Source: Octopus sinensis
Taxonomy: Eukaryota
Direction of reading: 5' to 3'
NCBI RefSeq assembly: GCF_006345805.1
Contig: NW_021833069.1
Location: 1-64,000 of the forward strand
DNA: 64,000 nucleotides
Both the position numbers and the translations under genes were made by a program. This document shows, piece after piece, positions 323-64,000 of the stretch; position 1 is the first letter of the stretch; each line of letters starts with the position of its first letter. The notes under the pieces were generated by a model that made no database searches, was not told the DNA's origin, and saw only the letters and a program-made list of their open reading frames with translations.

Positions 323-359
323 TAATTTTTAATAATATTATTTTTAATACATTTTTGAT

Positions 360-3230: not shown

Positions 3231-3560
3231 CAGAGTTTCCCGAGCTTTAACGTCAAAAGCGTATGCACTAGTGTTTACCCTTCAACCATTAAAGTTGACC
3301 CTTAAATCTTTTGTGTTGATGTTTCAAGCATTCGTGTTGAGCTTTAAAGATTAGCGTTTAAACAGCATATAAGCAAATTTTTCGGAAATTATGCGTTAGA
3401 CTAAGAGCTGTATAAACAAAAAATACAATATCTCTTTCAAAAAAATGATTGTTGAACATTCAATTAATAGAAAATCTAACACCGAAATAAGCGACTATCT
3501 AAATATGCCTCGATTCTCCATAAGTCAAACACTTTCTCAACGGAGAAAATCCCAAGATAT
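3231..3560 (+). mobile_element. 5' fragment of a DNA transposon (Tc1-like HTH start); related copy at about 34960-35200
   Basis: The two loci share ..ctgtaacgtc(a/g)aaagcg..gcatataagcaa..aaataag(c/t)ga(c/t)tatctaaatatg. The short reading SNTEISDYLNMPRFSISQ resembles a Tc1 HTH. Confidence 0.45.
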
Positions 3561-3779
3561 TAAGAGCGAAGATTATTTTTTAATTAAATGATTTACACTA
3601 GTGGTCTTTAACATTTTTGTTTTAAGGGTCAAATAAATATTTAATTTTTTTCACAGGCTTGAAAGGACCCCAGGCTTGAAGGGACCTACCCTAATTAGAT
3701 ATTTCATACACTTAATAATACAAATACCCAATAGGGGGTATCCTATATACTAAGGGTCAAATAAATATTTAATTTTTAA

Positions 3780-4265
3780 CAATTCAATGAGAAGTGGCGA
3801 AACTTCCGAAAACTCGGAGCTCTTCTTGGCGATTCCGAAGATATTACCAGACGAAAAATATTATCAACAATTGCACTTAAAAAACTTCAATCTATCTGGA
3901 TGAGAAAATCTAACTGTGGGCCTATAAGTCTAAATATACTTGAAACCCGCTGGCGCCTGTTTGGACATATTTTACGAATGAAGAAAGAAACACCTTGCAA
4001 TATGGCCATGGAAAAATTTTTCGGCCATGAATACTCTAAATATAGAGGACGTCCAAGAGACTGTCTTCCGGGAATACTTACGAAGGAATATGCTATGATC
4101 GGAGGCCGATTGATGGATGCAAACGATCTGGACGAAATCGGAAAGAGGGCAAGACGACGGAAGGGATGGAAGGGGCTAACGACAAGAATAGTTAAAAAAA
4201 TGGCACAAGCGAAACCATAAACTTTGTTTACTGGCAACGCGAACGTGCATTAACTAACTAACTAA
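3780..4265 (+). mobile_element. 3' fragment of an RTE-like non-LTR retrotransposon
   Basis: ORF 3900-4220 reads RWRLFGHILRM..RGRPR (RTE C-terminus) and is followed by a (CTAA)n tail. Confidence 0.75.
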
Positions 4266-4439
4266 TTCCATGCCAGCTCATAACAACAAGGACAATCATC
4301 ACCTTCGCGCGGTTGATCGTTTCCAGATTTGCCGGGAAATCGTATTTGTGGAACTTTTCCACTTCTACCTGTTTGAGACAATTTTGTGAAGTGATCCCAT
4401 CTCGATAAGTGATGACAATGACAATTTATTTATTTTACT

Positions 4440-5740
4440 AGTTAGGAAGACAGGAAAAACTAGCCATTATCGACGACGGGAAATTTTTTCAAAAGAATGA
4501 GGCACCGGAGTGTCCTTACTGAGCAGCATATTTCCCTGATAGACACTTTAGATATCTGACGTCCATTACAAAACAACCGGGCTTTCTCCAGGACGGACTG
4601 TATTTTGGGGACGCAGGATACATAAGAGTTATTCAATTTTTCTTTGAGATCGAGACCGTAGGCCAACTTAATGGTGTAACGCTTCGTTTTCTCGAGTTTG
4701 TTGATTAGACAAACCCTCTCACCTGTGTCATACCAGCTCTCAAACTCGTAAGTGAGAATCGGTTGTACACATGTCTTGTATATGTAGATGTACGTTTCTG
4801 GGCTCGCGGGCTCAGTATAGAACCCTGAGGGACACCTCTTTTGAGATCCACACAGTCCGATAGTCGGTTTCCGCACCGTACATAAGATTTCCTCTCGTTG
4901 AGATAACTCTTTAGCCATTTGAATGTTTTTTCACCTGCACCAGTCTCCAAAACTTTTTCCAGAAGTCCAAGGTGCCAGACGCAGTCAAAAGCCTTAGATA
5001 AATCCAAGCACACAGCGGTCGTGCAGGATTTATTGCGTATCGCCCAAGAAAGTTTCCTTTCTAGTACCTTCAGGCAGTTTCCCGTGGATTTGCCAGGACG
5101 AAAACCCCATTGTACATCGGAAAGAAGATTATTCTTTTCAACATGTAATGAGAGTCTTTCAAAAATTATTTTCTCCATAATCTTCAAAAAAGCGCAGATC
5201 AGGCTTATAGGCCTATAGTTTTCTGCTAGGAGACTTGTTTTCCCGGGTTTCGGGATCATACGAACGACTGTGCACTTCCAGGTGGGTGGAAGATAACCAA
5301 GGGTAAAACTAGCGTTGAAAAGCATAGTTAGAGCCCGTAGGAGGATCTTCGGAGTCTTCTTAAGAAGTAACACAGGTATGTAGTCGAATCCAGGGGCCTT
5401 GTTTTTCAGCCCTGCTATCGCTTCTTGTGTCTCTTTTTCGGTAATAGCCTCTCATAGAGGTCCATCCACAAGATTTAGAGATTCTAGCCTTGAAGTGACT
5501 TTCTCAAAGGTCTTCTATGGAATAATTGATTCAGGTTCGACTTCTTGGGTTTTTCCCAGCTGCCTTCTTAGTTCATTCGGGACAAGATCGGAGGGGATAT
5601 ACTTTCCATCTTGCCCCTTTAATACGATATTATCGATATTGGAGTTGCTGCGTTCCTTTATACTCTCGTCGACATAATTCTTTCCTATTCTGTAAGTTTT
5701 TGGTATATTTCGTATTTAGACAGTCAATGTTAACTTTAAC
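4440..5740 (-). mobile_element. Internally deleted CR1/Jockey-type LINE reverse transcriptase
   Basis: ORF 4705-5373 has IPKPGK, YRPISL, QWGFRPGKST, DLSKAFDCVWH and GVPQGSILSP. It then jumps directly to the C-terminal YKTCVQPILTY segment. Confidence 0.85.
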
Positions 5741-11794: not shown

Positions 11795-12381
11795 GAACTT
11801 TTTTTAAATTTATTAATGGAACTTGTTAAAAAAATCTAGCTATTAATTACTGGCTCGCAGAATTGAAAGACAATTCTCGCGTAAAACAGCCAGCGAGATC
11901 CTATGAATAAGGAATATAAATTCCCTGGGATCTCTGGAGCGATAGGTGCACAGACGGCCAAGTTTCTTAACATGAGCAAGCGTCTTGGCCCCAAAAACAC
12001 AGGAAGTCTCAACGGCAATTGCCCAAAAGCAAAATCGATCGCGCAAATCCTCTTATTTCGTCAGTTTCGTGAATTCGACCGACGAACCGGGTAGACAAGG
12101 TGTAGAATTCAAGGTTCCCTTGGCGAAAGAGTGGGCACAGATGACGTCCCAAACGAGCTGCTTCCCGGATTCCAAAGCGAAAAGTGTACAGCCGTCTGGA
12201 CGTTTTGCATCTCCAAGGACAAGGCCCGTCGGTTCCAGAACTGAAGGGAAACCAGCTCTTTCCAGAGCTTGATGAATTAGATTGTTAATTTCAGTGTGCC
12301 GAGGAAATCGGCCGGCGCTCATTCGACAAGACAGAGGATGTAGCCCAAAGGCGTCTTTATCCGCACAACTACAGGGGAAAA
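11795..12381 (-). mobile_element. 5'-truncated CRE-clade non-LTR element (CCHC finger plus restriction-like endonuclease)
   Basis: GLHPLSC..RH, LEPTGL..RPDG..WD, AVETS and RISLAVLR motifs. Probable 12-bp TSD tgagcaa(t/a)tatt at 11783 and 12382. Confidence 0.8.
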
Positions 12382-12744
12382 TGAGCAAATATTTTTTAAT
12401 GCATTAACAGAATAGAAAAAAGTATTCACGTTTTATTAAAATCAAATTATTTATTAAAGACCAAACACGGGCAAAGCCAGTTAATTATAGTTATTCCCGT
12501 GATGGTCTTTAAAAAAATAAAATAAAAAATAAAAAAAATTAAAATCAAATCTAATTCCTAATTGAAAATAATGAAAATGATCCTTTTTAAGACCTAATCT
12601 TGATTGAAGAGAGCTGAAATCGGCAGACGACATCGAACTCATGAGGGAACTATCGACGAACAGAGGGAATTGGAAGCTATTAACAAATCCTGGAGAAAGT
12701 GGCACAAGCGAGATAAATTCACTAAAGTTTTTTGCGGTTTTCTA

Positions 12745-25973: not shown

Positions 25974-28912
25974 CTAGCTCAGCAGTTCGCTTCGCTCACT
26001 GCGAGCTAGCTCCTGCGGAGCCCTGCTCGCTACGCTCGCAGTTTCCTTAAATAACTATAAATTTATGTAGATATATAAATGCGACCTGCTTTGATATAAC
26101 CTTATTCTAAGGCCTGTGGATAAACGATGTTTGCAGTCCGTCCATCCTTGGCAAATATAAATAAATTTCTCTTCTACCTACCCTTGAGCACCCCACATAC
26201 AGCTGGCCATGTGAAAAGCACTCGTTCTCTAAAAATAAGCCTACTACCTTTAAAGACTGTCCCTGGCCTTGTTTATTGTCATAGCAAAACTTATCTTCAG
26301 CGGAAATTGTAGTCTCTTAAATCTATCGCAGGCCCTTTCATGGTCCATAATAACGTCGACCGATTTATATATTCTTTCTCTGCCAGGGATTTTCATTAAT
26401 AAATCTAAATTTATATTAAGTACCTCATCATTAAGTGGAGCTAATATAGCTCGTTCACGCAGCCAGTCGAAATTCACGTAGTGTTCAGATAGTTCGGAAT
26501 AGACGGCATTCAATAATTCTTCTGCTGTTTCTACGAAAATACATAATTCTTCCGGTAGCCTAATTTTCTGGTCGTGCATTTCTGAAGTGATTGCCCCATT
26601 TCCAATATCTAGAAGGATTTGTGGGAATATGCTATTAACGCCTTGTAAATGTGCATGTACATTTACATCTAAGCTTACCTTTTTCACGTGTGTCCACAAA
26701 TATGACGATTTGAGGCAGGCATTCAATTCATCCGCAGGCGTCCCTCTTTGAATAATTGGCAGCGTCTGTCTAAAATCACCTGCCAATACAACTAATGCTC
26801 CCCCAAACAAATCGTCGCTACAATTCTTGATATCTCTATATGTTCGGTCAACTGCTTGAATGCGCCTTTATGAGCCATCGTACATTCATCCCAAACAATT
26901 AACCTAGAATGCATAATTCTATTACCCGTAGTTTAACAAAAACGCAGAAAATAATTTTTTTTTAATTTTTTGGCTTGAAGGTTTTGAGGGACCACATCAT
27001 GTGAGTCGAGGACTTCTTGTTGTTCATTTTAACAAAAACGCAGAAAATAATTTTTTTTAATTTTTTGGCTTGAAGGTTTTGAGGGACCACATCATGTGAG
27101 TCGAGGACTTTCTTGTTGTTCATTTTAACAAAAACGCAGAAAATAATTTTTTTTAATTTTTTGGCTTGAAGGTTTTGGGGGACCACATCATGTGAGTCGA
27201 GGACTTTCTTGTTGTTTATTTTAACAAAAACGCAGAAAATAATTTTTTTAATTTTTTGGCTTGAAAGTTTTGGGGGACCACATCATGTGAGTCGAGGACT
27301 TTCTTGTTGTTCATTTTAACAAAAACGCAGAAAATAATTTTTTTAAATTTTTACCTTGAAGGTTTTGGGGGACCACATCATGTGAGTCGAGGACTTTTGT
27401 TGTTCATTTTAACAAAAACGCAGAAAATAATTTTTTTAATTTTTTACCTTGAAGGTTTTGGGGGACCACATCATGTGAGTCGAGGACTTTCTTGTTGTTC
27501 ATTTTAACAAAAACGCAGAAAATAATTTTTTTAATTTTTTAGCTTGAAGATTTTGGGGGACCACATCATGTGAGTCGAGGACTTTCTGTTGTTCATTTTA
27601 ACAAAAACGCAGAAAATAATTTTTTTTAATTTTTTGGCTTGAAGGTTTTGGGGGACCACATCATGTGAGTCGAGGACTTTCTTGTTGTTCATTTTAACAA
27701 AAACGCAAAAAATAATTTTTTTAATTTTTTAGCTTGAAGGTTTTGGGGGACCACATCATGTGAGTCGAGGACTTTCTTGTTGTTCATTTTAACAAAAACG
27801 CAGAAAATAATTTTTTTAATTTTTTGGCTTGAAGGTTTTGGGGGACCACATCATGTGAGTCGAGGACTTTCTTGTTGTTCATTTTAACAAAAACGCAGAA
27901 AATAATTTTTTTTAATTTTTTGGCTTGAAGGTTTTGGGGGACCACATCATGTGAGTCGAGGACTTTCTTGTTGGTCATTTTAACAAAAACGCAGAAAATA
28001 ATTTTGTTAATTTTTTAGCTTGAAGGTTTTGGGGGACCACATCATGTGAGTCGAGGACTTTCTTGTTGTTCATTTTAACAAAAACGCAGAAAATAATTTT
28101 TTTTAATTTTTTGGCTTGAAGGTTTTGGGGGACCACATCATGTGAGTCGAGGACTTTCTTGTTGTTCATTTTAACAAAAACGCAGAAAATAATTTTTTTT
28201 ATTTTTTTTGGCTTGAAGGTTTTGGGGGACCACATCATGTGAGTCGAGGACTTTCTTGTTGTTCATTTTAACAAAAACGCAGAAAATAATTTTTTTTAAT
28301 TTTTTGGCTTGAAGGTTTTGGGGGACCACATCATGTGAGTCGAGGACTTTCTTGTTGTTCATTTTAACAAAAACGCAGAAAAAAATTTTTTTTAATTTTT
28401 TGGCTTGAAGGTTTTGGGGGACCACATCATGTGAGTCGAGGACTTTCTTGTTGTTCATTTTAACAAAAACGCAGAAAATAATTTTTTTTAATTTTTTGGC
28501 TTGAAGGTTTTGGGGGACCACATCATGTGAGTCGAGGACTTTCTTGTTGTTCATTTTAACAAAAACGCAGAAAATAATTTTTTTTAATTTTTTGGCTTGA
28601 AGGTTTTGGGGGACCACATCATGTGAGTCGAGGACTTTCTTGTTGTTCATTTTAACAAAAACGCAGAAAATTGACTTGAAGGTTTTGGGGACCTCATCAT
28701 CGAGGATATTCTTTCTTATTAAAATTTTTTGACAGGAAGGTTCTTAGAGGATATCAACCTTTTATTGTGCCTCATTATCGAATAACTACAAAAGGGAAGG
28801 TTTTGACAATTTGATCTGGTTTGTAACAATTTGAATGTGGGTGTGCACAGACAGACAGACAGACACACAGACAGACAGACAGACAACACACCATACCATT
28901 TTATTATTAAGA
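25974..28912 (-). mobile_element. Helitron (deletion derivative) with Pif1 helicase C-terminus
   Basis: Minus strand: 5'-TC at 28912, a (CTGT)n microsatellite, helicase motifs GDFRQTLP, RAILAP, FAMTINK and QLYVGCSRV, a GCGAAGC hairpin, and 3'-CTAG at 25974. Confidence 0.88.
26935..28710. repeat. Tandem array of about 95-96 bp, about 18 units, inside the Helitron
   Basis: Unit aaaacgcagaaaataatt(t)n..cttgaaggttttgggggaccacatcatgtgagtcgaggactttcttgttgttcattttaac. Units vary mainly in poly-T length. Confidence 0.95.
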
Positions 28913-32416: not shown

Positions 32417-34270
32417 ATGAAATACATCCTCATTACTGGCGACAATAAAACTTCCAGAGTAGAGGTCACCTGCAGTATTGGATTACTACTTAAGTCATCA
32501 ATGATCACTTTAATTCACATTGATGCTATTCCAAGAGAAATTAAATGTAATTTTTTCACTCTACTTAGACTATGAAAAGACAGTATTGAACGATGGAACG
32601 GTTTGCACAGGTGCTGTCGGGAAATTTGAACGGTTTCTTGACATTGAACTCACGGGTGCACATGTGATCGGCACAAATCAGATATACTGTAAAAATAACC
32701 ACGCTACGTCTACTTTTGACTCTGTTTTTGAAGTCCAAGAGCATGTTGTACAACGACTATTGGACACACCCCATACGCCCGGGAATGGATTAGTACCAGA
32801 AATATGTCTCATTGATGTAATATACCATGTTCAACGTAGTGCGCTGGAGAATTGAAAAATGGAAACGAATTGGGACAGTTCTCCCTTGATAAGTTTGTCT
32901 CTAAAATCGGAAATCAAAGCATTTTCCACATACATGTGTGGAATGATGAGGTGGTTTTATGATTTGATGTTAAGGCCGACGACAATGACTTGAGGCAACT
33001 TGAAAGTTTGGTTGAGAAGTTTAAAGAATTTGGTTTATCACCTGATGTGGTAACTGTTCTTCCGCATCTTAGATTATTAGCAAACACTCGGAAAGGGAAG
33101 TAACAAATTTAGAATCACCCAAAGTACTGTTCTAAAGACTTTGTAGGTCCTTTCTTACAATGGAGACTTTTTTAAAATGCCTCAGTCTTTGGTAGAACAG
33201 AACCTTATGTCTCTGATACAACAGAAGGTTACATCTGTAGACAAGCCTATGATTGATATTACAGCCCAATTGTTCGCGGAATATGCGTATTGCAGTGCAT
33301 TTTAATAAAAGTGACAAATTGGAGGCAGACGGTCTGATGGTCGCAGTTGTGTGCGAATTCACCGAATACTACCAATACGACGCAGTCCAAGAGGCCTTCC
33401 AGCATGCAATCATTTGGTTGGACAGTCCCTTTAAACTGAAAGTTGGCGGGTTCGTTATTATTTGCAGAAAATCAAGTCATCGGATTTGGAAGATCGAGAA
33501 AGTCCTGAATATACGTCTTCTTGGAATTTATTGAAGTCGTGTCGGTTAGAAAATGACCGGTCATTTACAGGGGAATTATGTGTGCTGGAGGGGCAGGCGT
33601 GAAGGGTGCCGAAGGAAGAGGACTTGCTGCGGGATATGCTAGACTAAACAAAATTCCGTTTTTAGGTAAATGTTGGTGTCAATGCTTCCAGGGGTCTGCT
33701 ACGGAATGCAATTTGCCATAATCGAGTTTGCACGGAATGTTTGTGGAATGGACTCTGCCAACACGACGGAGGTCGATCCAACTACACCATTTCCCGTGGT
33801 ATGTCCCTTGTTTCAACTCGAGGTTTCCAGGATCAAAAATGAGGTTGGGGAATCGAGCATGGATTATGGTTCTAAAGAGGTTCTCATCTCATCGACCGTT
33901 TCCCTCACCAGTATGACTTTTTTACAACAAACACAATTATCACGTAATATATTTAACAGGCGGAATATTTGAGACCGATCGCATTTACGAACGACACTTT
34001 AATAATTATGAGGTTGTTGTAATGTGGGCCAATAGTAGTTTAATAGGCAATATATCGAACTCTTCTCGTCGAAGGGAATGAAGTTTGTTGGGTTCTCGGC
34101 GATCCGGATGAGTGTGGCGATAGTTGAGATCGAATGTTGTATTTTTTTGTGAATTTCAAGACCATCCTTTTTTTGTAGCCACTCAATTCCACCCAGAATT
34201 TAATTCAAGATTCGGTTCTCCGTCTGCATTCTACACTTCTTTTCTGCGAGCAGTGAAATATGCCCGATAA
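32417..34270 (+). CDS. CTPS: CTP synthase-like protein: degenerate synthetase domain, intact glutamine amidotransferase triad
   Basis: 14 exons and 13 GT-AG introns (22-26 nt, one 49 nt) give an uninterrupted frame from MKYILITG to ..RAVKYAR-stop. Landmarks: [37 protein letters not shown] and [13 protein letters not shown]. Confidence 0.9.
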
Positions 34271-38019: not shown

Positions 38020-38781
38020 CAGTCCACAATAACAAAATTCTTATTCTTAATATATTTTTAATTAAATATTGTTTTACTGTAATTTTAATTCGTAACTTAT
38101 TCCAGGACAAATACTCACCAGTGAATCTTGCTGAAATCATTGCATACATTCTGATTAAAGCATTTGAGCAGAACAACCAGCTGAACCTCGACAAAGGATG
38201 GTTAAGTCCACTACAGAAACCCGGAAAACAAAAAGGACCTTTACTCAACTTAAGACCTTTTATTCTCGGAAAACACTATCACTGCTTGCACTGGAGAGGA
38301 TAAGAATCAAGGTGGAAAATTATCTGTCTCCGGGGCAAAGTGGATTCAGAACTGGAAGGTCCACTGCTGATGTTATCTGGACGCACAGATGGACCGCTGC
38401 TTTATGTCAAAAATATAAACGGTGTACTGAGATTCTCGGAATTGATATGTCCAGAGCATTCGACTCTGTTCATAGAACCAAACTTGTGGATGTACTTTCG
38501 AGCTTTCTAAATCAAGACGATGTCAGAATCATCATAAAGCTACTACAAGGCACCCAATTGGCAACCAAACTTGGCAAAACTGAGTCAAATTACTTCTACA
38601 CTTCACGGAGCATATCACAGGGTGACTTGATATCCCCAGTTCTGTTTATCGTCTACCTAGAAGCAGCACTCAGAGACCTCAGGCCTCTTTTGACAATAGC
38701 AAATATAATGAAATAATATATGCCGACGATGTCGACTTCGTTTTTGAAGACGCTGAAACCCTTCAGTATATTATTGAAACA

Positions 38782-41099
38782 CTAGCTCGGCAGCTCGCTT
38801 CGCTCACCGCGACCTAGCTCCTGCGAAGGGCCTGTTTCATCAACAACTATAAGTTTATGTAGATGTATAAAACTACCTGGTTTAATGTAACCCTATTCTA
38901 TCGCCTGTTGATAAACGATGTTTGTCGTCCGTCCTTCCTTGGCATATATGAATAAATTTTCTCTTCTGCCTACCCTCGAGCATCCCACATACAGCTGTCC
39001 ATGTGAAAAGCACTCACTCTCTAAAAATAACCCAACTACCTTTAATGACTGTCCCTGGGCCTTGTTTATTGTCATTGCAAAACTCATCCTCAAAGGAAAT
39101 TGCAGCCTTTTAAATGGTAATTCATCAGAAATTATCGGAATTCCTGGAATATAAACATCCTCACCTCTATACTTACCTGTTAATATCGTCGCCTCTATTA
39201 CGTTAGCCATCAAATTTTTGATAACTAACCTCGTTCCGTTGCATAATTTAGGTGGCGCAAGATTTCGTAATAAAACCACTGGAACGCCTATCTTTAACTT
39301 TAAAAGATGATTCGGCATTCCAGAGGGATCTAAGGAGTTTAAAAATTCAATCCGGTTGAATTTTTAGAAAATAACAAAAAAATAAAAAAAAACAAATAAA
39401 AAAACTTTAAAAATTTGTAAAATAGTATAAACAAAAAAAATCTCTGCCGCCACGGCAACAACCTGTCTAACTTTTTTAACAGCCAATTAAGATAATGCTT
39501 AAGAGCCTTTATAGTCCGGAGATTTAGCTTAGTGACCTTGATTAGACAAACCACTGGCGGAATGGGGCAGACGGAAATGGGGAGGCGGAGATACGGCAGG
39601 AAGAGTAGCAGCAGCCAAAAAAGCGACACACAAAAAAGATTTAATTAATTACCTTAAGCTGACCGTTTTTTCTTCAGCTTCGTTTTTCCTCCTTCGGTTA
39701 TCTATTGAAAAAATTATTTTTGAATAATAAAAAAGTTTAGGAAAAGAGGCATACCGAAAATAAATTCTATCTTTACGAAAAACTTAACTAAATAGTTAAT
39801 ATTTTTACGTAAATTCTTCTGATTGCGCTGTCAATTGGTGGTAAATTGTGTTAATGATTGTGCTAATGTGGTTTCAACTATCAAAGTGTTTTTCAAAATC
39901 TGTTAATTGCACACTCTATTCAAGGTCGTGCAATCTGTAATTGCACATTCTGTCAAAGTCAAATATGATAATAGCTTTAATTTGATTCATGTCGATAATG
40001 ATATATGCATTTAATTTTAAAGAGAAAAACATAGGATGAATTGAATTTCTTTCTCGCGAATAATTAGGAGTTCATCAGTGTTAATATTCTCGCTGTCGTT
40101 TTCATCAAGGATATTCTTAATACGTGAGATTTTTGCCTCGAAGGTTTTAATGGACCTCATCATGAATGTCGAGGACATTAACGTTGTTCATTTTAATCAA
40201 ATGCAGAAAATAATTTTTTGATTTTTTGGCGGGAAGGTTTCAAGGACCTCATCATGTAAGTCGAGGACATCGTAGTTGTTCATTTTAACCAAAATGCAGA
40301 AAATTTTTTTTTAATTTTTTTTGGGGAAGGTTTTAAGGACCCCATCATGTAAGTCGAGGACTTCGTAGTTGTTCATTTTAACCAAACTGCAGAAAATTTT
40401 TTTTTAATTTTTTTTGGGGAAGGTTTTAAGGACCTCATCATGTAAGTCGAGGACATCGTAGTTGTTCATTTTAACCAAAATGCAGAAAATTTTTTTTTAA
40501 TTTTTTGTGGGGGAAGGTTTTAAGAACCTCATCATGTAAGTCGAGGACATCGTAGTTGTTCATTTTAACCAAAATGCAGAAAATTTTTTTTTAATTTTTT
40601 TTGGGGGGGGGGAAGGTTTTAAGGACCTCATTATGTAAGTCGAGGACATCGTAGTTGTTCATTTTAACCAAAATGCAGAAAATTTTTTTTTAATTTTTTT
40701 TGGGGGGAAGGTTTTAAGGACCTCATCATGAATGTCGAGGACATTAACGTTGTTCATTTTAATCAAATGCAGAAAATAATTTTTTGATTTTTTGGGGGGA
40801 AGGTTTTAAGGACCTCATCATGTAAGTCGAGGACATCGTGGTTGTTCATTTTAACCAAAATGCAGAAATTTTTTTTAATTTTTTTGGGGGGAAGGTTTTA
40901 AGGACCTCATCATGTAAGTCGAGGACATCGTAGGGTGGAAGATTCTTGGAGGAGTTCATGATTTTAAGCTTGTTCCCCATTATTGGCTAATTATAAGGGG
41001 GAAAGATTTTGACAATTTATCTGTACTTTGCCAATTTGAAGTTGGTGTGCACACACAGACAGACAGACAGACACACACCATACCATTTTATTATTAAGA
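38782..41099 (-). mobile_element. Helitron (second copy), precise A|T insertion
   Basis: Minus strand: 5'-TC at 41099, a (CTGT)n tract, helicase ORF 38893-39318 ([41 protein letters not shown]), a hairpin, and CTAG at 38782. No TSD. Confidence 0.92.
40135..40935. repeat. About 8 diverged copies of the 95-bp Helitron repeat unit
   Basis: gaaggttttaaggacctcatcatgtaagtcgaggacatcgtagttgttcattttaaccaaaatgcagaaa(t)n, homologous to the 26935-28710 array. Confidence 0.9.
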
Positions 41100-42005: not shown

Positions 42006-43965
42006 CATCTAATCTCAATTTATTACCTAATCTCAAGTACCCTTTTTTCCTCATATCTAGGAACCTCTCCAAATTGCACAATATATTACATAATTTATTA
42101 AATAATCTCAAAGTACCCTTGTTTTCTCATATCTAGGAACCTATCCAAATTGCATAATATATTACGTAATTTATTACATAATCTCAAGTATCCTCGTATC
42201 TACACATTTAGGCACCTCTTAAAATTGCATAATATATTACGCAATTTATTACCTAATCTCAAGTACCCTTTTTTTCTCATATCTAGGAACCTCTCCAAAT
42301 TGCATAATATATTACGTAATTTATTACATAATCTCAAGTATCCTCGTATCTACACATTTAGGCACCTCTTAAAATTGCATAATATATTACGCAATTTATT
42401 ACCTAATCTCAAGTACCCTTGTTTCCTCATATCTAGGAACCTCTCCAAATTGCATAATATATAACGTAATTTATTACTTAATCTCAAGTATCCTCGTATC
42501 TACACATTTAGGCTCCTCTTAAAATTGCATAATATATTACGCAATTTATTACCTAATCTCAAGTACCCTTGTTTCCTCATTTCTAGAAACTTCTCCAAAT
42601 TGCATAATATATTACGTAATTATTACATAATCTCAAGTATCCTCGTATCTACATATTTAGGAACCTCCCCAAATTGCATAATATATTACGCAATTTATTA
42701 CCTAATCTCAAGTACCCTTGTTTCCTCATTTCTAGAAACTTCTCCAAATTGCATAATATATTACGTAATTATTACATAATCTCAAGTATCCTCGTATCTA
42801 CATATTTAGGAACCTCCCCAAATTGCATAATATATTACGCAATTTATTACCTAATCTCAAGTACCCTTGTTTCCTCATATCTAGGAACCTCTCCAAATTG
42901 CATAATATATTACGTAATTTATTACATAATCTCAGTATCCTCGTATCTACACATTTAGGCACCTCTTAAAATTGCATTATATATTACGCAATTTATTACC
43001 TAATCTCAAGTACCCTTGTTTCCTCATTTCTAGAAACCTCTCCAAATTGCATAATATATTACGTAATTTATTACATAATCTCAAGTATCCTCGTATCTAC
43101 ACATTTAGGCACCTCTTAAAATTGCATAATATATTACGCAATTTATTACCTAATCTCAAGTACCCTTGTTTCCTCATATCTAGGAACCTCTCCAAATTGC
43201 ATAATATATTACGTAATTTATTACATAATCTCAAGTATCCTCGTATCTACACATTTAGGCACCTCTTAAAATTGCATAATATATTACGCAATTTATTACC
43301 TAATCTCAAGTACCCTTGTTTCCTCATATCTAGGAACCTCTCCAAATTGCATAATATATTACGTAATTTATTACATAATCTCAAGTATCCTCGTATCTAC
43401 ACATTTAGGCACCTCTTAAAATTGCATAATATATTACGCAATTTATTACCTAATCTCAAGTACCCTTGTTTCCTCATATCTAGGAACCTCTCCAAATTGC
43501 ATAATATATTACGTAATTTATTACATAATCTCAAGTATCCTCGTATCTACACATTTAGGCACCTCTTAAAATTGCATAATATATTACGCAATTTATTACC
43601 TAATCTCAAGTACCCTTGTTTCCTCATATCTAGGAACCTCTCCAAATTGCACAATATATTACGTAATTTATTATCTAATCTCGAGTACCCTTGTTTCCTC
43701 ATATCTAGGAACTTCTCCAAATTGCAAAATATATTACGTAATTTATTACTTAATCTCAAGTATCCTCGTATCTACACATTTAGTCACCTCTTAAAATTGC
43801 ATAATATATTACGCAATTTATTACCTAATCTCAAGTACCCTTGTTTCCTCATTTCTAGAAACTTCTCCAAATTGCATAATATATTACGTAATTATTACAT
43901 AATCTCAAGTATCCTCGTATTTACATATTTAGGCACCTCCCAAAATTGCATAATATATTACGCAA
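42005..43965. repeat. 75-bp monomer / 150-bp dimer higher-order satellite, about 26 monomers
   Basis: Alternating A (..gtatcctcgtatctacacatttaggcacctctta) and B (..gtacccttgtttcctcatatctaggaacctctcc) monomers. Each carries the near-palindrome AATTGCATAATATATTACG(C/T)AATT. Confidence 0.95.
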
Positions 43966-44059
43966 TTAATTAGGCAATGTATTATTATTTATTTAATGGG
44001 AGTCAATAAAAAATAAGAATTAATTCGTATAAAAAAATTCAAAATCTTAATCAAATTTT

Positions 44060-45240
44060 TTTAATCTACGGAGCACAGTCAATGTCAGGAAATAAATCTG
44101 GTCTTCAAGCTCTTGTAAAAAACAGAGCACCAGAAATTATCTGGACGCACTGCATGCTGCACAGATCAGCACTTGTCTCAAAGAATATGAGTCCAGAACT
44201 GAACGATATTTTTGCGCAAATTACAAAAGTTATAACTACATAAAACACAGTCCTTTAAGAGCTAAGCTTTTTGCAAAGCTGTGTGAAGATATGGATTCAA
44301 AATATACATCGCTTTTATACTATTGTGAGGTACGCTGGCTATCTCGTGCAAAAGTGATTAGAAGGGTGTTTGAACTCAAAGATCAAGTTGCAGATTTTCT
44401 TGATGAAAATGATATTGAAGATGCAAAGTTGTTCAGGGATGATGACTTTATTGTCAAATTTGCCTATTTAGTTGACATTTTTGGGAAATTGAGTATATTG
44501 AATAAATCAATGCAGGGACCACAACTACATTTATTCTCTCAAAAGGACAAAATAAAAGCATTTATGAAAAAATTGGTATTATGGAAATCAAATATACAAA
44601 AAAATATCTATGACATGTTTCCACTTTTAAACACCTTTTGCGCCATAGTGAACATTGAAGCAAACAAAGACATATTTGCTGAACATTTGGATTGTTTGTT
44701 GAAGCATTTTGCTCACTATTTTAAAGATCTCGACTGTAAAATGTTCGAATGGATACAGAATCCATTTATTGATGAAGAAGATAATCAATTTGCATTGACA
44801 ACTTTTGAAAAAGAAAAATTGATAGAATTGTCATGCGATACATTATTGAAACAAAAATTTGAGAGAGAACCGCTAATTTCTTTTTGGTTGAATGTAAGAA
44901 CGGAATATGAAATTTTGTCGAATAAAGCAATGAAAGTTTTGTTGCCATTTGCTACTTCATATTTATGCGAAACTGGATTTTCTGCACTAGCTGCAATTAA
45001 ATCTAAATATCGAACTCGTTTAGTAGTGACTAATGAGCTAAGAGTAGCACTCTCTGCGATGACACCAAGATTTGAAAAACTTTGCGCCAAGATGGAAAAA
45101 AAATTATCTCATTAACTTTTTGTTTTAAAAAATTGTTTTTGATAAAATAATAATTGTATTATATTATGGAATATAAAGGGAGGCGCAAGATTGTACTTTT
45201 TCTCTAAGGGAGGCGCGTAAAAAAAAGCTTGGAAACTCTG
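44060..45240 (+). mobile_element. hAT (Buster/ZBED5-like) transposase 3' half with right terminus
   Basis: HCMLHR, YCEVRWLSRAKV, FATSYLCETGFS and KSKYRTRL. Ends TTGGAAACTCTG followed by the nnnTAnnn flank TCTTAGAG. The left part is missing. Confidence 0.88.
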
Positions 45241-46360: not shown

Positions 46361-47258
46361 TAATTCGAATTTGACTCATCACTTAGTTCTGCATTTGTTC
46401 CGTCGAACATTAACAATGCATTTATTTGATCTTCTGTTTTCTCCGAATCTCTTTTATCCCCCATAAAAATTTTGAAGGGCGCCCATTTCGTAGTTTCATG
46501 TTGTGTAGTGTTATATTTGTATACAATTTCTTGATAAAATTCCTTGAATTTCCCTAGCATTCCGTTGTATGCACTTGTAGAGCTAATCCATCTTTTAATT
46601 GATTGATTAAACCTACAAATAAATTGACTATAAGGAACCACTCCACTTGCCCCTGAACCCAGGGTGCTCTAGGTCGTCCACATATATAAGTGATGTTTAG
46701 TAATTCGGAGCACATTAATTCCATGCATTTATTCTTGAACTAAAATTTGGATTCTGGAAGTTTTACCACTGCAAATTTGGAAAAGGAGTCGATTACAACA
46801 ACCAACTATGACTTTTTTTTGATTTTTTATCTGTTACTATGACTTATTCAAAAAAAGACCCATCCATAATTGCTGTTAAGGTTTGAATATCTCCTTAGAT
46901 CCACTAAATCTGCAATATACCGATCTCTAGGTCCTCTTGCAATTATGTGGGTGATAGTTGGATTTGTTGCCATGAAATTTTTCGACTAACACTGATTAAC
47001 AACATTACTTGGCAATAGACACATTTTGCTATCACACTACAAATTTCTTCCCTTGTTACTGTATATATTTGGTCTCTTAGTTTATTAATAAAAAGTTGTA
47101 GTTTTCACGCTAAAATATTTAAAAAAAAGAACAATAAATTATTAAAATAATTAAGAAAATTATTATTTCCAATGAAATTAAATATATAAAAATATTATTA
47201 TTATAAAATATGGCAGTAGGTGGGTTATCCAACCCAGTGGGCTATAAAACCGGTGACA
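46361..47258 (-). mobile_element. Ginger-like integrase fragment with 5' terminus
   Basis: PRDRYIADLVDL, VIDSFSKFA, GRPRAPWVQGQVE and FNQSIKRW. The GTGACA end is at 47258. The 3' part is cut by the pogo element. Confidence 0.8.
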
Positions 47259-47288
47259 AAGGTTATAATTAGTTTTAAATTAATCAGT

Positions 47289-47878
47289 GGAGGAATAGTC
47301 GATTCCAAAGGACTACACCCTTTGTCTTGCAAGAGGAGTGCAGGTCGCGCTCCCCGCCATGCCGCACTCAACGACATAATACGACGGGCCCTCGAGAGCG
47401 CAGGATTTCCAGCACACCTGGAACCCATCGGGCTTGACCGGGGAGATGGCAGAAGGCCCGATGGGATAACTCTTTTCCCGTACTCCCAGGGAAAATCACT
47501 CGCATGGGATGCGACGTGCGTAGACACGTTCTCCCAGTCCATGATTCTTCGGAATATTCATTCGCCCGGTTGGGCTGCTAATGCAGCAGAAAAGGCGAAG
47601 ATATATAAGTATTTGGAGATCGGAAAACTTTTCCGTTTTGTCCCAATCTCGATAGAGACGTCTGGTGTAGTGGGATCCAAAACCGCGGAATTTCTCAAGG
47701 AAATTGGGGCGATGCTGGCTAAACGAAGGAGGGACAGTCGCGAGGGGTATTGGCTTCGCCAACGTATCGGAATTGCAGTTCTTCGTGGCAACACGCACGC
47801 GATACTGGCTGCCGGAGCGTGACGATTTATAATATAAAACTAATCTAGCTTCGTTTTGGTTAATAAAATTAAATTTTC
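47289..47878 (+). mobile_element. 5'-truncated CRE-clade element with 11-bp TSD
   Basis: GLHPLSC..RHAALND, LEPIGL..RRPDG..AWDATCVDT and IETSG motifs. TSD AATTAATCAGT at 47278-47288 and 47879-47889. Confidence 0.88.
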
Positions 47879-51169: not shown

Positions 51170-52110
51170 GTATTATTGCTCGAACTATGTTTGGTCATAA
51201 ATATGAACAAAAAATAATGAAGATACCTTTGTCAGATAACACTGTTTCTCGTCGGATTTGTGCTTTGTCGGAAAATATTGAAAAAAGTGTCTCATTTTCT
51301 ATTAAAGAAACTCGATTTTCATTACAACTTGACGAAGCCACTGATATTTCGGGAATGGCACATTTGTTGGCATATATACGATTTGTTTATTCTGGGAAAA
51401 TTACAGAACAATTCTTGTTTTGCAAGCCTCTTTTAACTACTACTCGAGCAATTGATATGTTCACGATATTAAACGATTATTTCAATATCAATAATATTTC
51501 ATTTGCCAATTGTATTGGTATATGTACAGATGGAGCCCCGTACATGTCTGGTCGTATTAATGGACTTGTTTCATTAGTTGAATCTAAAAATAATAAGATA
51601 ATATCATCACATTGTTTTTTGCATCGAGAAGTATTGGTTGTAAAAACATTACCTATGAATTTAAAATCTGTCTTGGATGATATTATCCGAATGATTAATG
51701 ATATAAAAAGTCGACCCAAAAAATCTCGCATTTTTACTACTATTTGTGATGAAATGGGGTCAAACTTTACAAATTTGTTACTTCATACCGAAATTCGATG
51801 GCTATCAAGGGGTAAAGCATCAACGAGGGTTTTTGAAGTAAAGGACGAAATGTATGAGTTTTTTAAATTGGAGGGACATTCTGAATTTGTTGAAAAAATT
51901 CAGAATCCAATTTGGTCTTTAAAACTTGCGTATTTATCTGACATTTTACAAATATTAAACGAGGTTAATGCAAGTATGCAAGGACGTTCTGAGACTATTT
52001 TATCGTCGACGGACAAATTAAATTCTTTGAAAATGAAAATCAGTTTTTGGAGAAAAAGGGTTTTAGATGGCGATTATAGTATGTTTCCTAATACAAATGG
52101 TTAGTTATAT
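51170..52110 (+). mobile_element. hAT (ZBED5/Buster-like) transposase central fragment
   Basis: ORF 51187-52104: PLSDNTVSRRI, LQLDEATD, CTDGAPYM, HCFLHRE and TEIRWLSRGK. Confidence 0.9.
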
Positions 52111-52639: not shown

Positions 52640-54635
52640 CAGGGGTCGGCAAATCGCGGCCCGCGGGCCAAATTAGGCCCAGGAAGATTTAAAAATGGCC
52701 CGCGAACAAATTTTATAATACTAAGGGAAATTGGCCCGCCGACAAATTTTTCCAACTAACATGGCCCGCGGGCAAATTTAGTAAAGTACTAGACTTTTAG
52801 TAATATAGATTTATACATACGTTTTATCTATTATTAAAAATTAAATAAATTTATAAACGTGTTAATAATTTTGTGTGGTGAATTTGAATGCCGAATTGTT
52901 CGAAAAGAACTAAAGATCTTCAAACCCGTACGTTTAATCCAGATTGGACTCATGAATATTTCTTTATTGAGGATTATGGAAAACCTATATGCTTAATATG
53001 TTTCGAAAAAGTTGCTGTCAAAAAACTTTATAACATCAAGCGACATTATGAAACTCGACATTACGAAAAATTCAGCAAGTTTACAGGAGAATCTCGCTTA
53101 AAGGAAATTAAGAGACTCGAACAAAATTACCAAAAGCAAACAACATTTTGTATAATTTGAGTTGTGAAAAAGATGATATCACACGTACAAGTTACGAAAT
53201 TTCAAAGATAATTGCGAAACGAATGAAACCATTTTCAGACGGAGAATTTATAAAAGAATGCTTAATGGCAGTAGCTGAAAATCTATTTCCTACAAAAAGA
53301 AACATTTTTGAATCTATCTGTTTATCTCCAAGAACGGTAACAAGAAGAGTAGAAGAAATGTCATTCGATTTAAATAACTCTTTAAAAAACATTTTTGGGA
53401 ATTTCAAATATTTTTCTATCGCATTGGATACTAGTACTGACAGAAGAGATACTTCTCAGCTTGTCATATTTGTTCGAGGGATAACTGAAACATACCAAAT
53501 TTTTGAAGAATTTGTCAAAGTTATTCCAATTATGGGTACAGTGACAGGAACCGACGTTTTCTTGCATTTAATGGAACTTTTAACAGAATTAAATCTTCCA
53601 CTTGCAAAATTAGTTGGAATTACAACAGACGGGGCTCCATCTATGGTTGGGAACAAAAAGGGAACTATTACATTACTCCAAAATGAAATGGAAAAATTTG
53701 GAATCGAGCACAATTTGGTTAAGATTCACTGTATTGTTCATCAAGAGGCGTTAGTTGCCAAATCAGTCAGGTTACGTGAGACAATGGATGCTGTTGTTAA
53801 TGCAGTAAATTTTATTTTATCCCGCGGCTTGAATCATCGGCAGTTCAGGCAATTTTTAATCGACACTGAAGCAGAATATGGGGATCTTTTATATTTTTGT
53901 AATGTCAGATGGCTTAGTAGAGGATCAATGCTCAAAAGGTTTTTTCATATACGGGAAGATGTTATAATTTTTCTTGAAGAAAAGAATTATGATGCTTCAT
54001 ATTTCCGAAATACTGATAATATTTCCAAATTGGCATTTTTTGTAGACATAACTTCACATCTAAATGACTTAAATTTGAAACTGCAGGGAAGTAATAAATT
54101 TATACACCAAATGTATGCCGAAATCACTGCTTTTGAAAATAAATTGAAGTTGTGGGAATTACAGTTACAAAAAGGAAACATGACGCATTTTGTGAATTTT
54201 CTTTCTACGAATCCGACTGATGTTCCGGAATATGCAAACATAGTTATGGAATTGAGATCAGAATTTTCATCACTTTTTATGGATTTAAGAGTAAAATGCG
54301 CATATATAATTTTTTAGGCTCATAAAAATCTTTTCAACATTTTTTCAATCCCATTTGATGTTGAAACTGAGACAGTACCAGGGTGTTATCAAATGGAATT
54401 ACTTGAAATTCAATGCGTCAGTACACTTAAATCAAAATATTTTTCTGAAATGGATATTTTGTGCTTCTACAAAAATTTTGTATGTGTCAGAAAATATCCG
54501 CAATTAACCGACAATGCTATGAAAATGGCTTGTATATTTGGAAGCACATTTTTATGTGAACAGTTATTCTCTAAAATGAATAATGTAAAAAATTGTCTGA
54601 GAACGAGGATTACCGATTCACATCTTAACGATATA
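52640..54635 (+). mobile_element. SPIN/GTF2IRD2-like hAT transposon, left end intact, right end lost
   Basis: Left TIR CAGGGGTCGGCAAA after the flank CTTTATAC. Has a zinc finger (CLIC..RHYETRH), TTDGAPSM, HCIVHQE, VRWLSRG and FGSTFLCEQLFS. One frameshift near 53155 and a 27-nt intron at 54291-54317. Confidence 0.9.
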
Positions 54636-56137: not shown

Positions 56138-57448
56138 TATCTAATTCCTAAAAAGAACGAACGTGAGACCCCGAAAGATTTACGGCCTATAACATGCATG
56201 TCGACACTTTATAAGTTAGTTACCAAGTGTGTTAATGGAAAACTGTCTGAGTTCATGGATGTATTTGGCTTAATTTCAGACAATCAACTTGGTACGAGGA
56301 GACGGTGTCAGGGTGCTAAAGAACAGGCCCTTATTAACCAATGCCTAAATAAAGAGTATGGAAATGGGCTATACTCTGCATGGATTGATGTCAAGAAGGC
56401 TTTCGATTCTGTTGACCACGACTTTTTATTTCATGTGTTGGAGTGTCCTGGGATACCTGTATGGATTGTTAACTTTGTTAAAAGGACTGTACGAATGTGG
56501 ACTGTAAAGCTCCATGTTGACGGAAGGAGAATTGGTTCTGTAAAGTTGACCCGAGGGATTTTACAAGGAGACTCGTTATCTCCGCAACTGTTTGTTATGG
56601 TGATGGACCCACTAAGCAGGATTCTTAATGCCATGTTTCCAAAGGTTCAGATTAATCAACAGGACCCAAATATGTTGACCTATTCTACTAATCATTTGTT
56701 CTTCATTGACGACCTAAAGATATTCGCTCTTAAAGAAGATGTAGTAATTAAAATGATGGAAGCTGTTGATGGATTCTTTAAAACTGTTGGCTTGGAGATG
56801 AATTCAGAAAAGTCAGCATCAAATGTCAAATCTTTATCTTGTTGTGAGATTTTGGAAGGAGTCAAAGGATATCGCTACTTGGGTGTACTTGAAGATGCAG
56901 GAAGTAATGTTCTTAAGAGTAAAGTAATGGATTCTATCCTTGGAAATGTAAAGGAAAGGATAACCATGCTTTCAAAGACGAAATTAAATGCGGTAAATTT
57001 ATTCCACGCTATAAATGAATATGCCATTTCTCTATATAATTATTACATCGGACTTATTAATATTGAACCTCATGAATTTGATTGTATTGACCGTCAAATA
57101 CGACAACTTCTTACGACTCTCAGACTCCATCTCAAACCTGCAAATAAAGAGAGGTTATATTTAAATTGGAAATCTCTTGGGAGAGGACTTGCTTCAGTCT
57201 CTTTCAGAAGTGAACTGATACTTTTCCAGTTCATGAAAAGTTTAGAAAGACAGTCGACAGTATGCTTACGGAGATCGGGAATCCTGCGTGTGATACAAAC
57301 AAATAAATGGCATATGGCCACAATTGCAGGACTTCTCGCCTCCAAGTATGCAATTCTCGACATAGAGAATTTGGGTGTTGAGTTTATCAAAGATGCTCAA
57401 AGAAAATATTTGCTTAAGAACATCAATTTTGCAGACGAAATTTTGTAG
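56138..57448 (+). mobile_element. R4/Dong- or NeSL-like non-LTR reverse transcriptase; open frame, truncated at both ends
   Basis: YLIPK..RPITCMSTLYKL, WIDVKKAFDSV, GILQGDSLSP, HLFFIDDLK, YRYLG and ERLYL..GRGL. Confidence 0.9.
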
Positions 57449-61674: not shown

Positions 61675-62638
61675 ATGATTCTAACTAACTCTTGCAGCAT
61701 TCATTTTTTACAAGAAATAAAAACATTTTACTGTTCAATGAGCAAAAAGGGGATAGAATTGAATCCATTTTATTCTAAATATGCCGAAAAGATTAAAAAG
61801 TATAAGCATTCGTATAAATTCCAGTATATCTAAAAAAGTGGTTCAACCACAAGAAACACTCCTGGACACACCGGGATGTAAACCCCGACAAAAACTAGTG
61901 ATTTGATTGATTACAAAAATTTAGAAATTAAGTGACATCATGAAAACCGAAATGATTGAGGACAAGAACGCTCGAGAAATAGTGAAGGAAAGCTTTTGGT
62001 GTTAATAAATAGATTTGGGAAGAGTACCACGCAAAGAGACAGTGCTCCCTCTACTCTACGATTCCTGTTTGCATTCCCTACTTTATAAACTAAGTCTTCG
62101 GTGTTCGAACTTATTCAAGAGCGTGCCACGCTGTGTCCTCATGTGTGTTTTAAATTTTATTAAAAATATTGATTAACTGAATTAATATTTTTAATTAATA
62201 AATTCTATAGTTCGTGCTACCTGTGGCTCGATTGAATGGGTACGAGTTCTTTTACCTCAACTACTACGACAATTCAGTCATCTTCTATCCATTAGAGGCT
62301 TACCGAGTACATTTATGAGCTTATATTTATAGAAACAAGGAAAAGATGTTCCCCCAGCCCTTGCAGTGCACTATTTTACTGAATTGGCCCAATCAAAGTC
62401 GCTCGTTCTTATGCAGGGGCACTATTCCACGGCCTGTCTGGTATTTTTCGATTACTCACTTTGGAGTGCTGAGCAGGCTTGCATGCTGGCCAATCAGTTC
62501 AAAATGTACTACGGTGCTTATAGTGGGGACAGAATTGGGCTACTTAGGGTTTTTAATTACTCTCCACATTTGTTTTCTGTTACTGATTTGATTAAGGAAC
62601 TACAAATAGAAGCTACAAGAGTTGTTGATAATAAATAA
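61675..62638 (+). CDS. ATPAF1: ATP synthase mitochondrial F1 complex assembly factor 1 (ATP11), complete
   Basis: Spliced frame: NPFYSKYAEKI..LSDIMKTEMIEDK..IWEEYH..IP..FELIQERATLCPHFVLPVARLNGYEFF..HYFTELA..LVLM..LANQFKMYY. The start codon is tentative. Confidence 0.88.
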
Positions 62639-64000
62639 TAATTTTTAATAATATTATTTTTAATACATTTTTGATTCATTTTGTGATGTGTGGCACATTT
62701 AGGTCCGGTAGTTTGTTTGACATCGAAGAGGCTTCACCGGTTAAAAGATGGAGTTCTTTCACTTTGAATGGCTCGAGAGTTTATATTTGATTTTACTTTA
62801 TTAAGGCGATTCATGCTCCCCACGAAATAGATTTATCCTGTGTATTTTCTAAAATCAACGCTTTACCATCAAATAATGAAGTTAATATGAAAATGAAATA
62901 TAAATTCAAAAAGTATTAATCCACATCTATGTTGAGAGGTGAGTTGGCCTCTCGACTGGTTTTCCTCCGTCACAAACAAAACTCTATCAGGTCTCTCAAC
63001 TTCAGTAAAGTCGATAAGAAAATCTTCAATGTCGAAAAAGTCAAAAAGGATAATTTTTTGTTTGTTCTTTGCCGAGATTTATTTTCAAACCAAAACCGAG
63101 CAATTGTAATTCTCTCGGAAGATGCTATTTCTATCACTTCTGGATTTGAGCTTACCATTTTTTACCCTTGGTTTGTTGCTGCTCAGTTGATTTAGGGACA
63201 TGTGCATAGTTGGGGATATCATTTACTACTTCAACTTAAGCAAATTGAGTTATAAGAATGTTTTAATGTGAGTGTACTAAATGTTGGTGTTTATAAAAGA
63301 GTCAAACAATTTATTTTAACCAAGAGTATTAGTAAATGGCATCGGGGTATGTGGCACTTAGTTTTTGAAGAAAACTGTTTAAATGGTCTCTGTCCTGGGT
63401 CTCTACAACGCATTTTATCTTGATTATAGGGAACATAGGCTTACTCTTGTCTTGAAGACGTCCTCTTTGACCCAGGCTCTTTCATGGAGAATGTCCTTAA
63501 TACTAACAGTGAGTGGAAAGCCAACCTCACATTGCAACTGGCTATTAGATTGCACAGGCCTAGCACTCCTCCCACTCGGTCACTCACTGTCACAGAAAAT
63601 TTAGACAGACGTCCGTCGGTGGCTAACCCACGGTCGATGCAGCGTCCGACGATCGACATGTCTATGTTTCCCCCGCATAGCGGAATGACGACCCTTCGTT
63701 TAGTTAACAATGTCAGTCTACGTTTTGCCACTCAACTCGGGGACTAGTCCTTGGCAGATCGCAGCCAGTCCTACGGCCCCTCCTCCTTCCACCAAAAATT
63801 TTTCATTCTCCAGCAACCTCAGGATAGCCAGAGAAATGTTTTCTTCCCTACAGAATAAACTAGACAAACCATACAAAACACATAAATTTTTGTCTACATT
63901 TTTAGAGGCGATTTGAAAGGCCGTCTCTCCTACTGTAGGTACTGCCAGACCTAAATTCAGTTATGCAAGTCCTGCCATCTGCTAGAGTTGATTTAGGCTC
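62317..64000. repeat. Direct repeat of window positions 1-1684 (offset 62,316 bp)
   Basis: All ORFs in 1-1684 recur with identical translations at +62316. I saw no nucleotide difference by eye. Confidence 0.97.
63329..64000 (-). CDS. Repeat of the 3' half of the threonine dehydratase gene
   Basis: Same sequence as 1013-1684. Confidence 0.9.

Follow-up and report, generated by a model that had tools for sequence, protein, structure and literature searches.

CTP synthase (CTPS; EC 6.3.4.2) ranks with the most highly conserved enzymes in nucleotide metabolism, and, to our knowledge, essentially every free-living cell possesses it. The metazoan enzymes CTPS1 and CTPS2 combine an N-terminal amidoligase (ALase) or synthetase domain (PF06418) with a C-terminal class I glutamine amidotransferase (GATase) domain (PF00117). 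The window analyzed here, i.e., the whole 64,000-nt stretch at positions 1 to 64,000 of contig NW_021833069.1 of the Octopus sinensis assembly GCF_006345805.1, contains a CTPS-like gene at positions 32417–34270 (+), whose predicted 502-aa product has the domain order, the length, and the N-terminus (MKYIL.TG) of the metazoan enzymes. Common to both are also the class I GATase triad and the glutamine pocket, and the metazoan-specific insert is partly present, including Trp358. In contrast to metazoan CTPS, however, the protein has lost the P-loop of the ATP site, the catalytic lysines, the Mg-binding aspartate, and the UTP/CTP motif, and, in addition, the ammonia gate (P52, H55, V58), the L4 loop, and the GTP site. 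The gene looks like one that is kept by selection, and its product is best described as a half-pseudoenzyme.

Comparison with known proteins identifies the gene as a descendant of an animal CTP synthase. In a search of solved structures, the best match was human CTPS1 (5u03; E = 3.7e-56, covering residues 1–496), and human CTPS1 (194 bits), Drosophila CTPS (180 bits), and human CTPS2 ranked ahead of the archaeal, yeast, and bacterial enzymes, with the E. coli protein scoring 126 bits. When the whole protein was searched against 5.8 billion proteins, canonical CTPS sequences were the only matches, with 26–32% identity over the full length and 36–39% identity in three partial matches. Pfam recognized both domains, albeit very unequally: the GATase family PF00117 scored 71 bits (cut-off 23) and the CTP_synth_N family PF06418 only 36 bits (cut-off 26), a value far exceeded by what is expected of a genuine CTPS. 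The ALase domain alone did not retrieve any match at E ≤ 0.001 among the 5.8 billion proteins, and a search with exon 2 alone against 1.84 billion representatives yielded no true relative, merely spurious matches to repetitive proteins.

For a residue-by-residue comparison, the protein was aligned with a reference set of 117 bacterial, archaeal, and eukaryotic CTPS sequences, in which 110 columns show a conservation of at least 95%. Residue roles were taken from a cryo-EM study of Drosophila CTPS (PMC8325340) and from a review of the regulation by GTP (PMC9138612), and the conserved GATase columns are given in human numbering unless stated otherwise. The ALase domain keeps 18 of 57 near-invariant columns, as compared to 36 of 52 in the GATase domain (Fisher p = 1.1e-4), and identity to canonical CTPS amounts to 20–25% and 36–41%, respectively. 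In normal CTPS the asymmetry is usually reversed, the ALase domain being the better conserved one; the frog and clam enzymes, for example, share 80% identity in the ALase and 68% in the GATase domain. The losses within the ALase domain are also focused on functional sites. All 14 conserved columns that contact ATP, Mg, UTP, the tunnel, or GTP are lost, versus 25 of the 43 other conserved columns (p = 0.0025); the remaining 18 of these 43 non-contact columns are retained, and the fold-level signature of the domain is still recognizable.

An earlier note on this stretch had described a full-length CTPS homolog with replaced amidoligase motifs and an apparently dead synthetase domain, and each of the replacements it listed is present in the alignment. 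In exon 1, MKYILITG is followed by a degenerate P-loop (32438–32467), in which GGVISGIGKG has become GD--NKTSRV, i.e., a loop shortened by two residues. Within this shortened loop K16 is replaced by R, and the further ATP and phosphoryl-transfer residues D70, E146, and R217 have changed to A, D, and H, respectively, the last of them in exon 5. The position of the catalytic K38 is occupied by H or by D, according to how the sequences are aligned; in this region IHIDA (32513–32527) stands in place of IKIDP, and the segment IKIDPY...EHGE as a whole has turned into IHIDAIP, a nine-residue deletion in the tunnel/gate segment, and REIKYYEK. The ammonia gate P52/H55/V58 and E66 are replaced or deleted, as is part of the tunnel wall. 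Both DLDLGNYERF and ELGGTVGDIE are replaced: TGAVG (32607–32621, exon 2) stands in place of DLDLG with the Mg/phosphoryl residue D70, and in exon 3 the replacement of LGGTVGDIE has eliminated the contacts T150, D153, and E155. The L4 loop KERxGDYLGxTVQ is shortened and unrecognizable (KERxGDYLG portion at 32688–32726, exon 2). In exon 4, GEQKTKPTQ of the UTP/CTP triphosphate site is replaced by ADDNDLRQL (32975–33004), which removes K193, T194, K195, and Q198, while GLSPD is kept; other changes in the UTP/CTP site are T150 to E, D153 to N, E155 to N, and H55 to Y. The positions K16, K38, D70, E146, and K193/T194/K195 thus are all replaced, which bears out the view of a dead synthetase. Exchange of either K16 or K38 for alanine was sufficient to cause a dramatic drop of activity in Drosophila CTPS (PMC8325340). 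Since the ATP-, Mg-, and UTP/CTP-binding residues, the catalytic lysines, and the acidic residues are all gone, synthesis of CTP from UTP should be impossible for this protein. Judged from its sequence, the ancestral mode of binding is lost for ATP, UTP/CTP, and GTP alike, and the protein cannot convert UTP to CTP. Measured against the definition of a functional CTPS (EC 6.3.4.2), the two-domain architecture is there, and three of the four defining elements, namely, the ATP site, the UTP/CTP site, and the GTP site together with the ammonia gate, are missing; with the loss of residues essential for the ancestral reaction, the protein shows one of the hallmarks of a pseudoenzyme.

The GATase domain shows a different pattern. 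All seven columns involved in glutamine hydrolysis (G372, G374, C399, Q403, E423, H526, and E528) are kept, corresponding to G327, G329, Cys354, Q358, E378, His477, and Glu479 in the numbering of the protein itself. The oxyanion strand and the lid L11 are encoded at 33584–33619 (exon 9), where the glycines are conserved, and exon 10 encodes GVCYGMQ, which includes the nucleophile Cys354 (33697–33699) and Q358, as well as ANTTEV (33757–33774) with E378. His477 (34190–34192) and Glu479 (34196–34198) of the triad follow in exon 14; the positions which the earlier note had given for the three triad codons were right. With the triad, the oxyanion glycines, the Gln and Glu of the pocket, and a PF00117 score above threshold, the domain has the sequence characteristics of a class I triad GATase. 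The conserved columns of the GTP site, by contrast, are lost without exception (seven of seven: K306, Y307, F373, R376, R449, R479, and R481), versus nine of 45 other columns (p = 8.6e-5). In the GTP-contacting region 306–310 (PMC8325340), CEF (33352–33360, exon 7) stands in place of GKY. In lid L11, F373 is replaced by A and R376 by K; in exon 11, MDYG (33859–33870) stands in place of MRLG, with R449 of wing L13 (R440 in E. coli; PMC9138612) changed to D; and in exon 12, ERHFNNYE (33989–34012) in place of ERHRHRYE lacks the GTP purine contacts R479 and R481 (E. coli R468 and R470; PMC9138612, PMC8325340), the latter being replaced by N, and H480 is lost as well. Lid L11 and wing L13 are thus partly lost, and a total of 16 of the 52 near-invariant GATase columns are replaced, i.e., about a third of the non-hydrolysis positions. 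In true CTPS, efficient glutamine hydrolysis requires GTP, lid L11, and wing L13, and is weak without GTP (PMC9138612). The loss of the GTP site, which from the alignment is a new element relative to the first description of the locus, matters because it is GTP together with the lid and wing elements that promotes hydrolysis (PMC9138612). The claim of an intact glutaminase, made in the earlier note, therefore holds for the Cys-His-Glu triad, the oxyanion glycines, Q403, and E423, but is too strong for the domain as a whole, in which the complete GTP activator site, its coupling link to the synthetase, and parts of L11 and L13 have disappeared, and predicted activity is uncertain.

The gene does not appear to be a decayed copy. 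Its model comprises 14 exons and 13 GT-AG introns with a 1509-nt coding sequence, in which all 26 splice dinucleotides are in place and no in-frame stop, frameshift, or broken splice site occurs. Neutral decay was simulated by applying substitutions, and indels at one tenth of the substitution rate, to the 14-exon model: copies with an intact model amounted to 7% at a divergence of 1% and to 0.5% at 2%, and were absent from 5% upwards. Since about 75% of the ALase residues differ from every known CTPS, the divergence probably accumulated while the frame and the 26 splice dinucleotides were under selection, which argues against an old pseudogene, in agreement with the first description. Moreover, domain asymmetry and site-focused losses are unlike the products of neutral decay. 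It is the sequence itself, by way of the neutral simulation, the domain asymmetry, and the focus of the losses, that lends indirect support to selection.

Dicyemid sequences evolve very fast (PMC6736024, PMC6543705), and the contig most likely is DNA of a dicyemid parasite which was assembled with, and labeled as, that of its host O. sinensis. Both genes recognized on the contig contain introns of 22–26 nt, which would be unexpected for octopus genes and therefore point to a dicyemid contaminant; the only animals reported to have introns this short are Dicyema japonicum and myxobolid myxozoans (PMC13644364), so that the word "parasite", used in the earlier note, was well chosen. The renal sac of O. 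sinensis is the habitat of D. japonicum, the genome of which has a GC content of 36.7% and consists of 49% repeats (PMC6736024). The window is similar, with about 36% GC and a content made up mostly of transposon open reading frames (ORFs) and satellites. As a baseline for the conservation of an ordinary enzyme in this genome we used the second gene, a member of the PALP family. It retains its motifs, and one of its exons matches a solved L-threonine dehydratase with 80 bits (E = 1.5e-21); fast evolution throughout the genome consequently is insufficient as an explanation.

The explanation which we favor, and which we regard as moderately probable, is that a dicyemid gene derived from animal CTPS has been maintained by selection and now codes for a half-pseudoenzyme with a nucleotide-independent glutaminase function. 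The GATase domain would act as a nucleotide-independent glutaminase or as a related, thioester-forming amidohydrolase, and ammonia and glutamate would be released to the solvent rather than ammonia passing down a tunnel. The dead ALase domain might serve as a structural, possibly oligomerization, platform against which the GATase domain packs; lying upstream of the GATase domain, it must also preserve an open reading frame. Although a third of the near-invariant GATase positions outside it have been replaced, the full hydrolysis apparatus survives, and the GATase domain therefore probably still forms the glutamyl thioester and acts as an uncoupled glutaminase or related amidohydrolase. A more far-reaching version holds that this is the only CTPS homolog in the dicyemid genome, that de novo CTP synthesis has been given up, that cytidine or CTP precursors are taken from octopus urine, and that the GATase domain has been reused as a free-standing, nucleotide-blind glutaminase; we put it forward tentatively, as a possibility rather than an expectation.

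Several points weigh against a maintained glutaminase. The exon/intron model is homology-guided and was fitted to canonical CTPS, and because it was built in this way, its intactness is partly true by construction; of the statement that the gene splices cleanly through 13 canonical introns, made when the locus was first described, the 13 GT-AG introns and the 502-aa frame stand, but introns 10 and 11 are uncertain from the DNA alone. Retention of all seven hydrolysis columns is marginal when taken alone (p = 0.085). Residues were assigned to classes from the literature at a time when the losses were already known, so that the tests on these classes are supportive and not blind. The retained triad could be nearly inactive or could use another substrate. 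Finally, no close relative, ortholog or paralog, of the protein was found among the 5.8 billion proteins. As none of the matches in the protein searches was close enough to be dicyemid, the missing transcript-derived CTPS-like protein is uninformative with respect to expression. A CTP synthase entry was likewise absent from the supplements of the Dicyema papers.

Among the alternatives, a prozyme-like regulatory subunit, which assembles via ALase-derived interfaces with a canonical dicyemid CTPS and modulates its activity or polymerization, is the one that fares best, although we consider it unlikely. CTPS dimerizes and tetramerizes through the ALase domain, the structural, non-catalytic segments of which are kept (18 of 43 non-contact conserved columns), but the tetramers form around bound ATP and UTP, and both of these sites are destroyed here. 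Retention of Trp358 is consistent with a filament-forming partner, another idea of the earlier note; however, YTSSW (33510–33524, exon 8), which corresponds to the metazoan-specific filament contact YHxxW, has Thr in place of His355, and the exchange of one residue of the His355/Trp358 pair weakens that idea. Parasite prozymes provide a precedent for such a subunit (PMC3663545, PMC5201418). Against it, the near-complete retention of the triad and glutamine pocket would be left unexplained, and a canonical CTPS is not encoded within the 64-kb window. Alignment with other CTPS proteins and a search for a second copy had been suggested at the outset; the former, against the 117 reference sequences, yielded the comparisons described above, and the latter did not reveal a second CTPS-like locus within the 64-kb window. 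Weak tblastn matches to CTPS residues 210–247 at about 27.0 and 27.6 kb fall in a 96-bp satellite and are due to chance.

It is improbable, in our view, that both domains are inert and that the protein has a structural or moonlighting role, with the triad surviving merely as part of the folded core. The loss of the GTP site, the lid L11 Phe, and the wing Arg, all of which promote hydrolysis (PMC9138612), would be in line with an inert scaffold, as would the marginal statistics of triad retention (p = 0.085), but a scaffold does not account for the conservation of Cys, His, Glu, Q403, E423, and both oxyanion glycines in a domain in which 16 of 52 other near-invariant columns have been replaced. 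Quite improbable is a gene that has long coded for a pseudoenzyme and was silenced very recently, or was never expressed, losing its last function before stops or frameshifts could arise. The surrounding region is rich in transposons and satellites, and 7% of the simulated copies were still intact at 1% neutral divergence; yet the frame and all 26 splice dinucleotides are intact, and domain-asymmetric, site-focused conservation is not produced by neutral decay. That the gene codes for a highly divergent but active CTP synthase with an unusual active site, as the full-length two-domain architecture and the very fast evolution of dicyemid sequences (PMC6736024, PMC6543705) might suggest, is hardly credible in view of the replacement of K16, K38, D70, E146, T150, K193, T194, K195, Q198, and R217, the P-loop shortened by two residues, the nine-residue deletion in the tunnel/gate segment, the dramatic effect of K16A or K38A alone on Drosophila CTPS (PMC8325340), and the failure of the ALase domain alone to match any of 5.8 billion proteins at E ≤ 0.001.

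With respect to the gene model on which the selected-glutaminase reading draws, three-frame translation of the region revealed CTPS-like segments which switch reading frame every 50–250 nt. The reading frame (+) extends from the start codon ATG (32417–32419) to the stop codon TAA (34268–34270). Exons 1 to 6, coding for the ALase domain, are located at 32417–32546, 32569–32816, 32840–32950, 32975–33046, 33073–33123, and 33147–33286, the last of them comprising the end of the domain and the interdomain linker. The GATase domain starts in exon 7 (33312–33441) and continues through exons 8 (33468–33544), 9 (33571–33665), 10 (33692–33798), 11 (33823–33910), 12 (33960–34012), 13 (34039–34135), and 14 (34161–34270). 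The intervening introns 1 to 13, all on the same strand (+), occupy 32547–32568 (22 nt), 32817–32839 (23 nt), 32951–32974 (24 nt, with an in-frame TGA inside), 33047–33072 (26 nt), 33124–33146 (23 nt), 33287–33311 (25 nt), 33442–33467 (26 nt), 33545–33570 (26 nt), 33666–33691 (26 nt), 33799–33822 (24 nt), 33911–33959 (49 nt), 34013–34038 (26 nt), and 34136–34160 (25 nt), so that 12 of the 13 introns measure 22–26 nt and only intron 11 is outside this range. Intron 10 (GTATGT...CGAG) is in frame and free of stop codons and could alternatively be retained as eight extra codons; its removal is favored only by the alignment length. For intron 11, use of an alternative donor at 33944 would shorten the intron to 16 nt and add 11 codons, both versions being in frame; with 49 nt removed, the distance from MRLG to ERH agrees with that in other CTPS. 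Either choice at introns 10 and 11 preserves the frame, and all functional motifs are unaffected. The path with the minimum number of introns, a 12-intron frame, was rejected, as it skips or misreads four segments homologous to canonical CTPS; a 37-nt "intron" which it places at exon 6 is wrong and was superseded by the homology-guided choice. Among 200 dinucleotide shuffles of the region, introns of 20–50 nt being allowed, none was threadable with ≤12 introns, and 152 were not threadable at all.

The gene is situated within a unique stretch of about 9.5 kb, which is delimited by a 96-bp satellite (26932–28671) on one side and by reverse-transcriptase/PIF1-like fragments (38.2–39.3 kb) on the other. 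Two related satellites flank the gene region, the 96-bp one with 18 copies and a 93-bp one with 8.5 copies (40140–40933), and each adjoins a PIF1/Helitron-like helicase fragment, at 26250–26810 (–) and 38893–39318 (–), respectively. Capture of the gene by a Helitron or another transposon, which the PIF1-like fragments and the related satellites on both flanks brought to mind, is unsupported, as a self-comparison did not reveal long repeats bracketing the gene. The 96-bp array reads as a repetitive ORF of 159 aa. A third satellite of 150 bp, with a half-unit of 75 bp, is present in 13 copies at 42017–43972; it reads as a repetitive ORF of 333 aa, and the 42–44 kb bin over this satellite shows a very strong GC skew of –0.48. 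A large part of the window consists of long mobile-element ORFs, which agrees with the 49% repeats of D. japonicum (PMC6736024). Intron-less ORFs with reverse-transcriptase domains are located at 4705–5373 (–) and 38198–38716 (+), and an ORF at 44291–45115 (+) weakly matches a hAT dimerization domain. By eye, the ORF at 56198–57448 (+) is reverse-transcriptase-like, and those at 51187–52104 (+) and 53148–54317 (+) resemble hAT-type transposases. The ORFs at 12053–12388 (–) and 47220–47822 (+), neither of which has a Pfam match, share the segment GLHPLSC..SAGR.PRH...I..AL..AGFP..LEP.GL and probably code for an uncharacterized protein of a repeated element. Matches to Rfam families were not found anywhere in the window.

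The PALP-family gene, threonine dehydratase/serine racemase-like, lies at about 1400–2600 (–) of the window and includes a long exon ORF (1677–2129) with the motifs SAGNHA and GGAGL; inside this ORF there is an in-frame, 24-nt GT-AG intron, GTATCTTTGTCCTGTCTACTCGAG. Relatives of the ORF above 56% identity were not found in the protein search. An exact database look-up of four ORFs of the window did not retrieve any match, and only the PALP ORF is on record, as a gene call on contig VCDQ01013367.1 (116,224 bp; GCA_006345805.1). This contig, of which the window represents positions 1–64000, contains a direct repeat whose period is 62,316 bp: positions 1–1684 of the window are 100% identical to 62317–64000, and record positions 62317–67445 match 1–5130 at 99.98%. 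Given this period, the 116-kb contig corresponds to approximately 1.87 copies of one unit, and a tandem duplication, a circle that was read through twice, or an assembly artifact could account for it. Around record position 94.7 kb, a second, near-identical CTPS-like gene would be expected.

A maintained copy that has lost all three nucleotide sites, with the glutaminase core spared, would amount to a natural uncoupling experiment on a textbook tunneling enzyme, and would reveal residues that matter solely for coupling. If the gene is the only copy, it would mark a metabolic dependency of the dicyemid on its cephalopod host, and a rare instance of an animal that has lost de novo CTP synthesis. 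On the practical side, it appears that a 116-kb contig of the public assembly of Octopus sinensis is derived from a parasite. A full-text literature search for a CTPS pseudoenzyme did not return anything relevant; its one result was an unrelated paper.

As in the case of the CTPS-like gene, parasites have kept intact genes for homologs that lack catalytic residues, namely, the AdoMetDC prozyme of Trypanosoma and a dead paralog of deoxyhypusine synthase (PMC3663545, PMC5201418). However, the trypanosomatid prozymes are wholly dead and are activators of an active paralog, whereas the CTPS-like protein consists of two fused domains, only one of them dead, and an active paralog is not known. PdxT, HisH, and TrpG have a triad-containing GATase fold that hydrolyzes glutamine and is activated when it docks to a functional synthase. 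With these stand-alone class I glutaminases or glutaminase subunits the CTPS-like protein has in common the Cys-His-Glu GATase fold and the PF00117 match; in contrast to them, it carries its partner domain fused to the GATase, and this partner is devoid of an active site to receive the ammonia.

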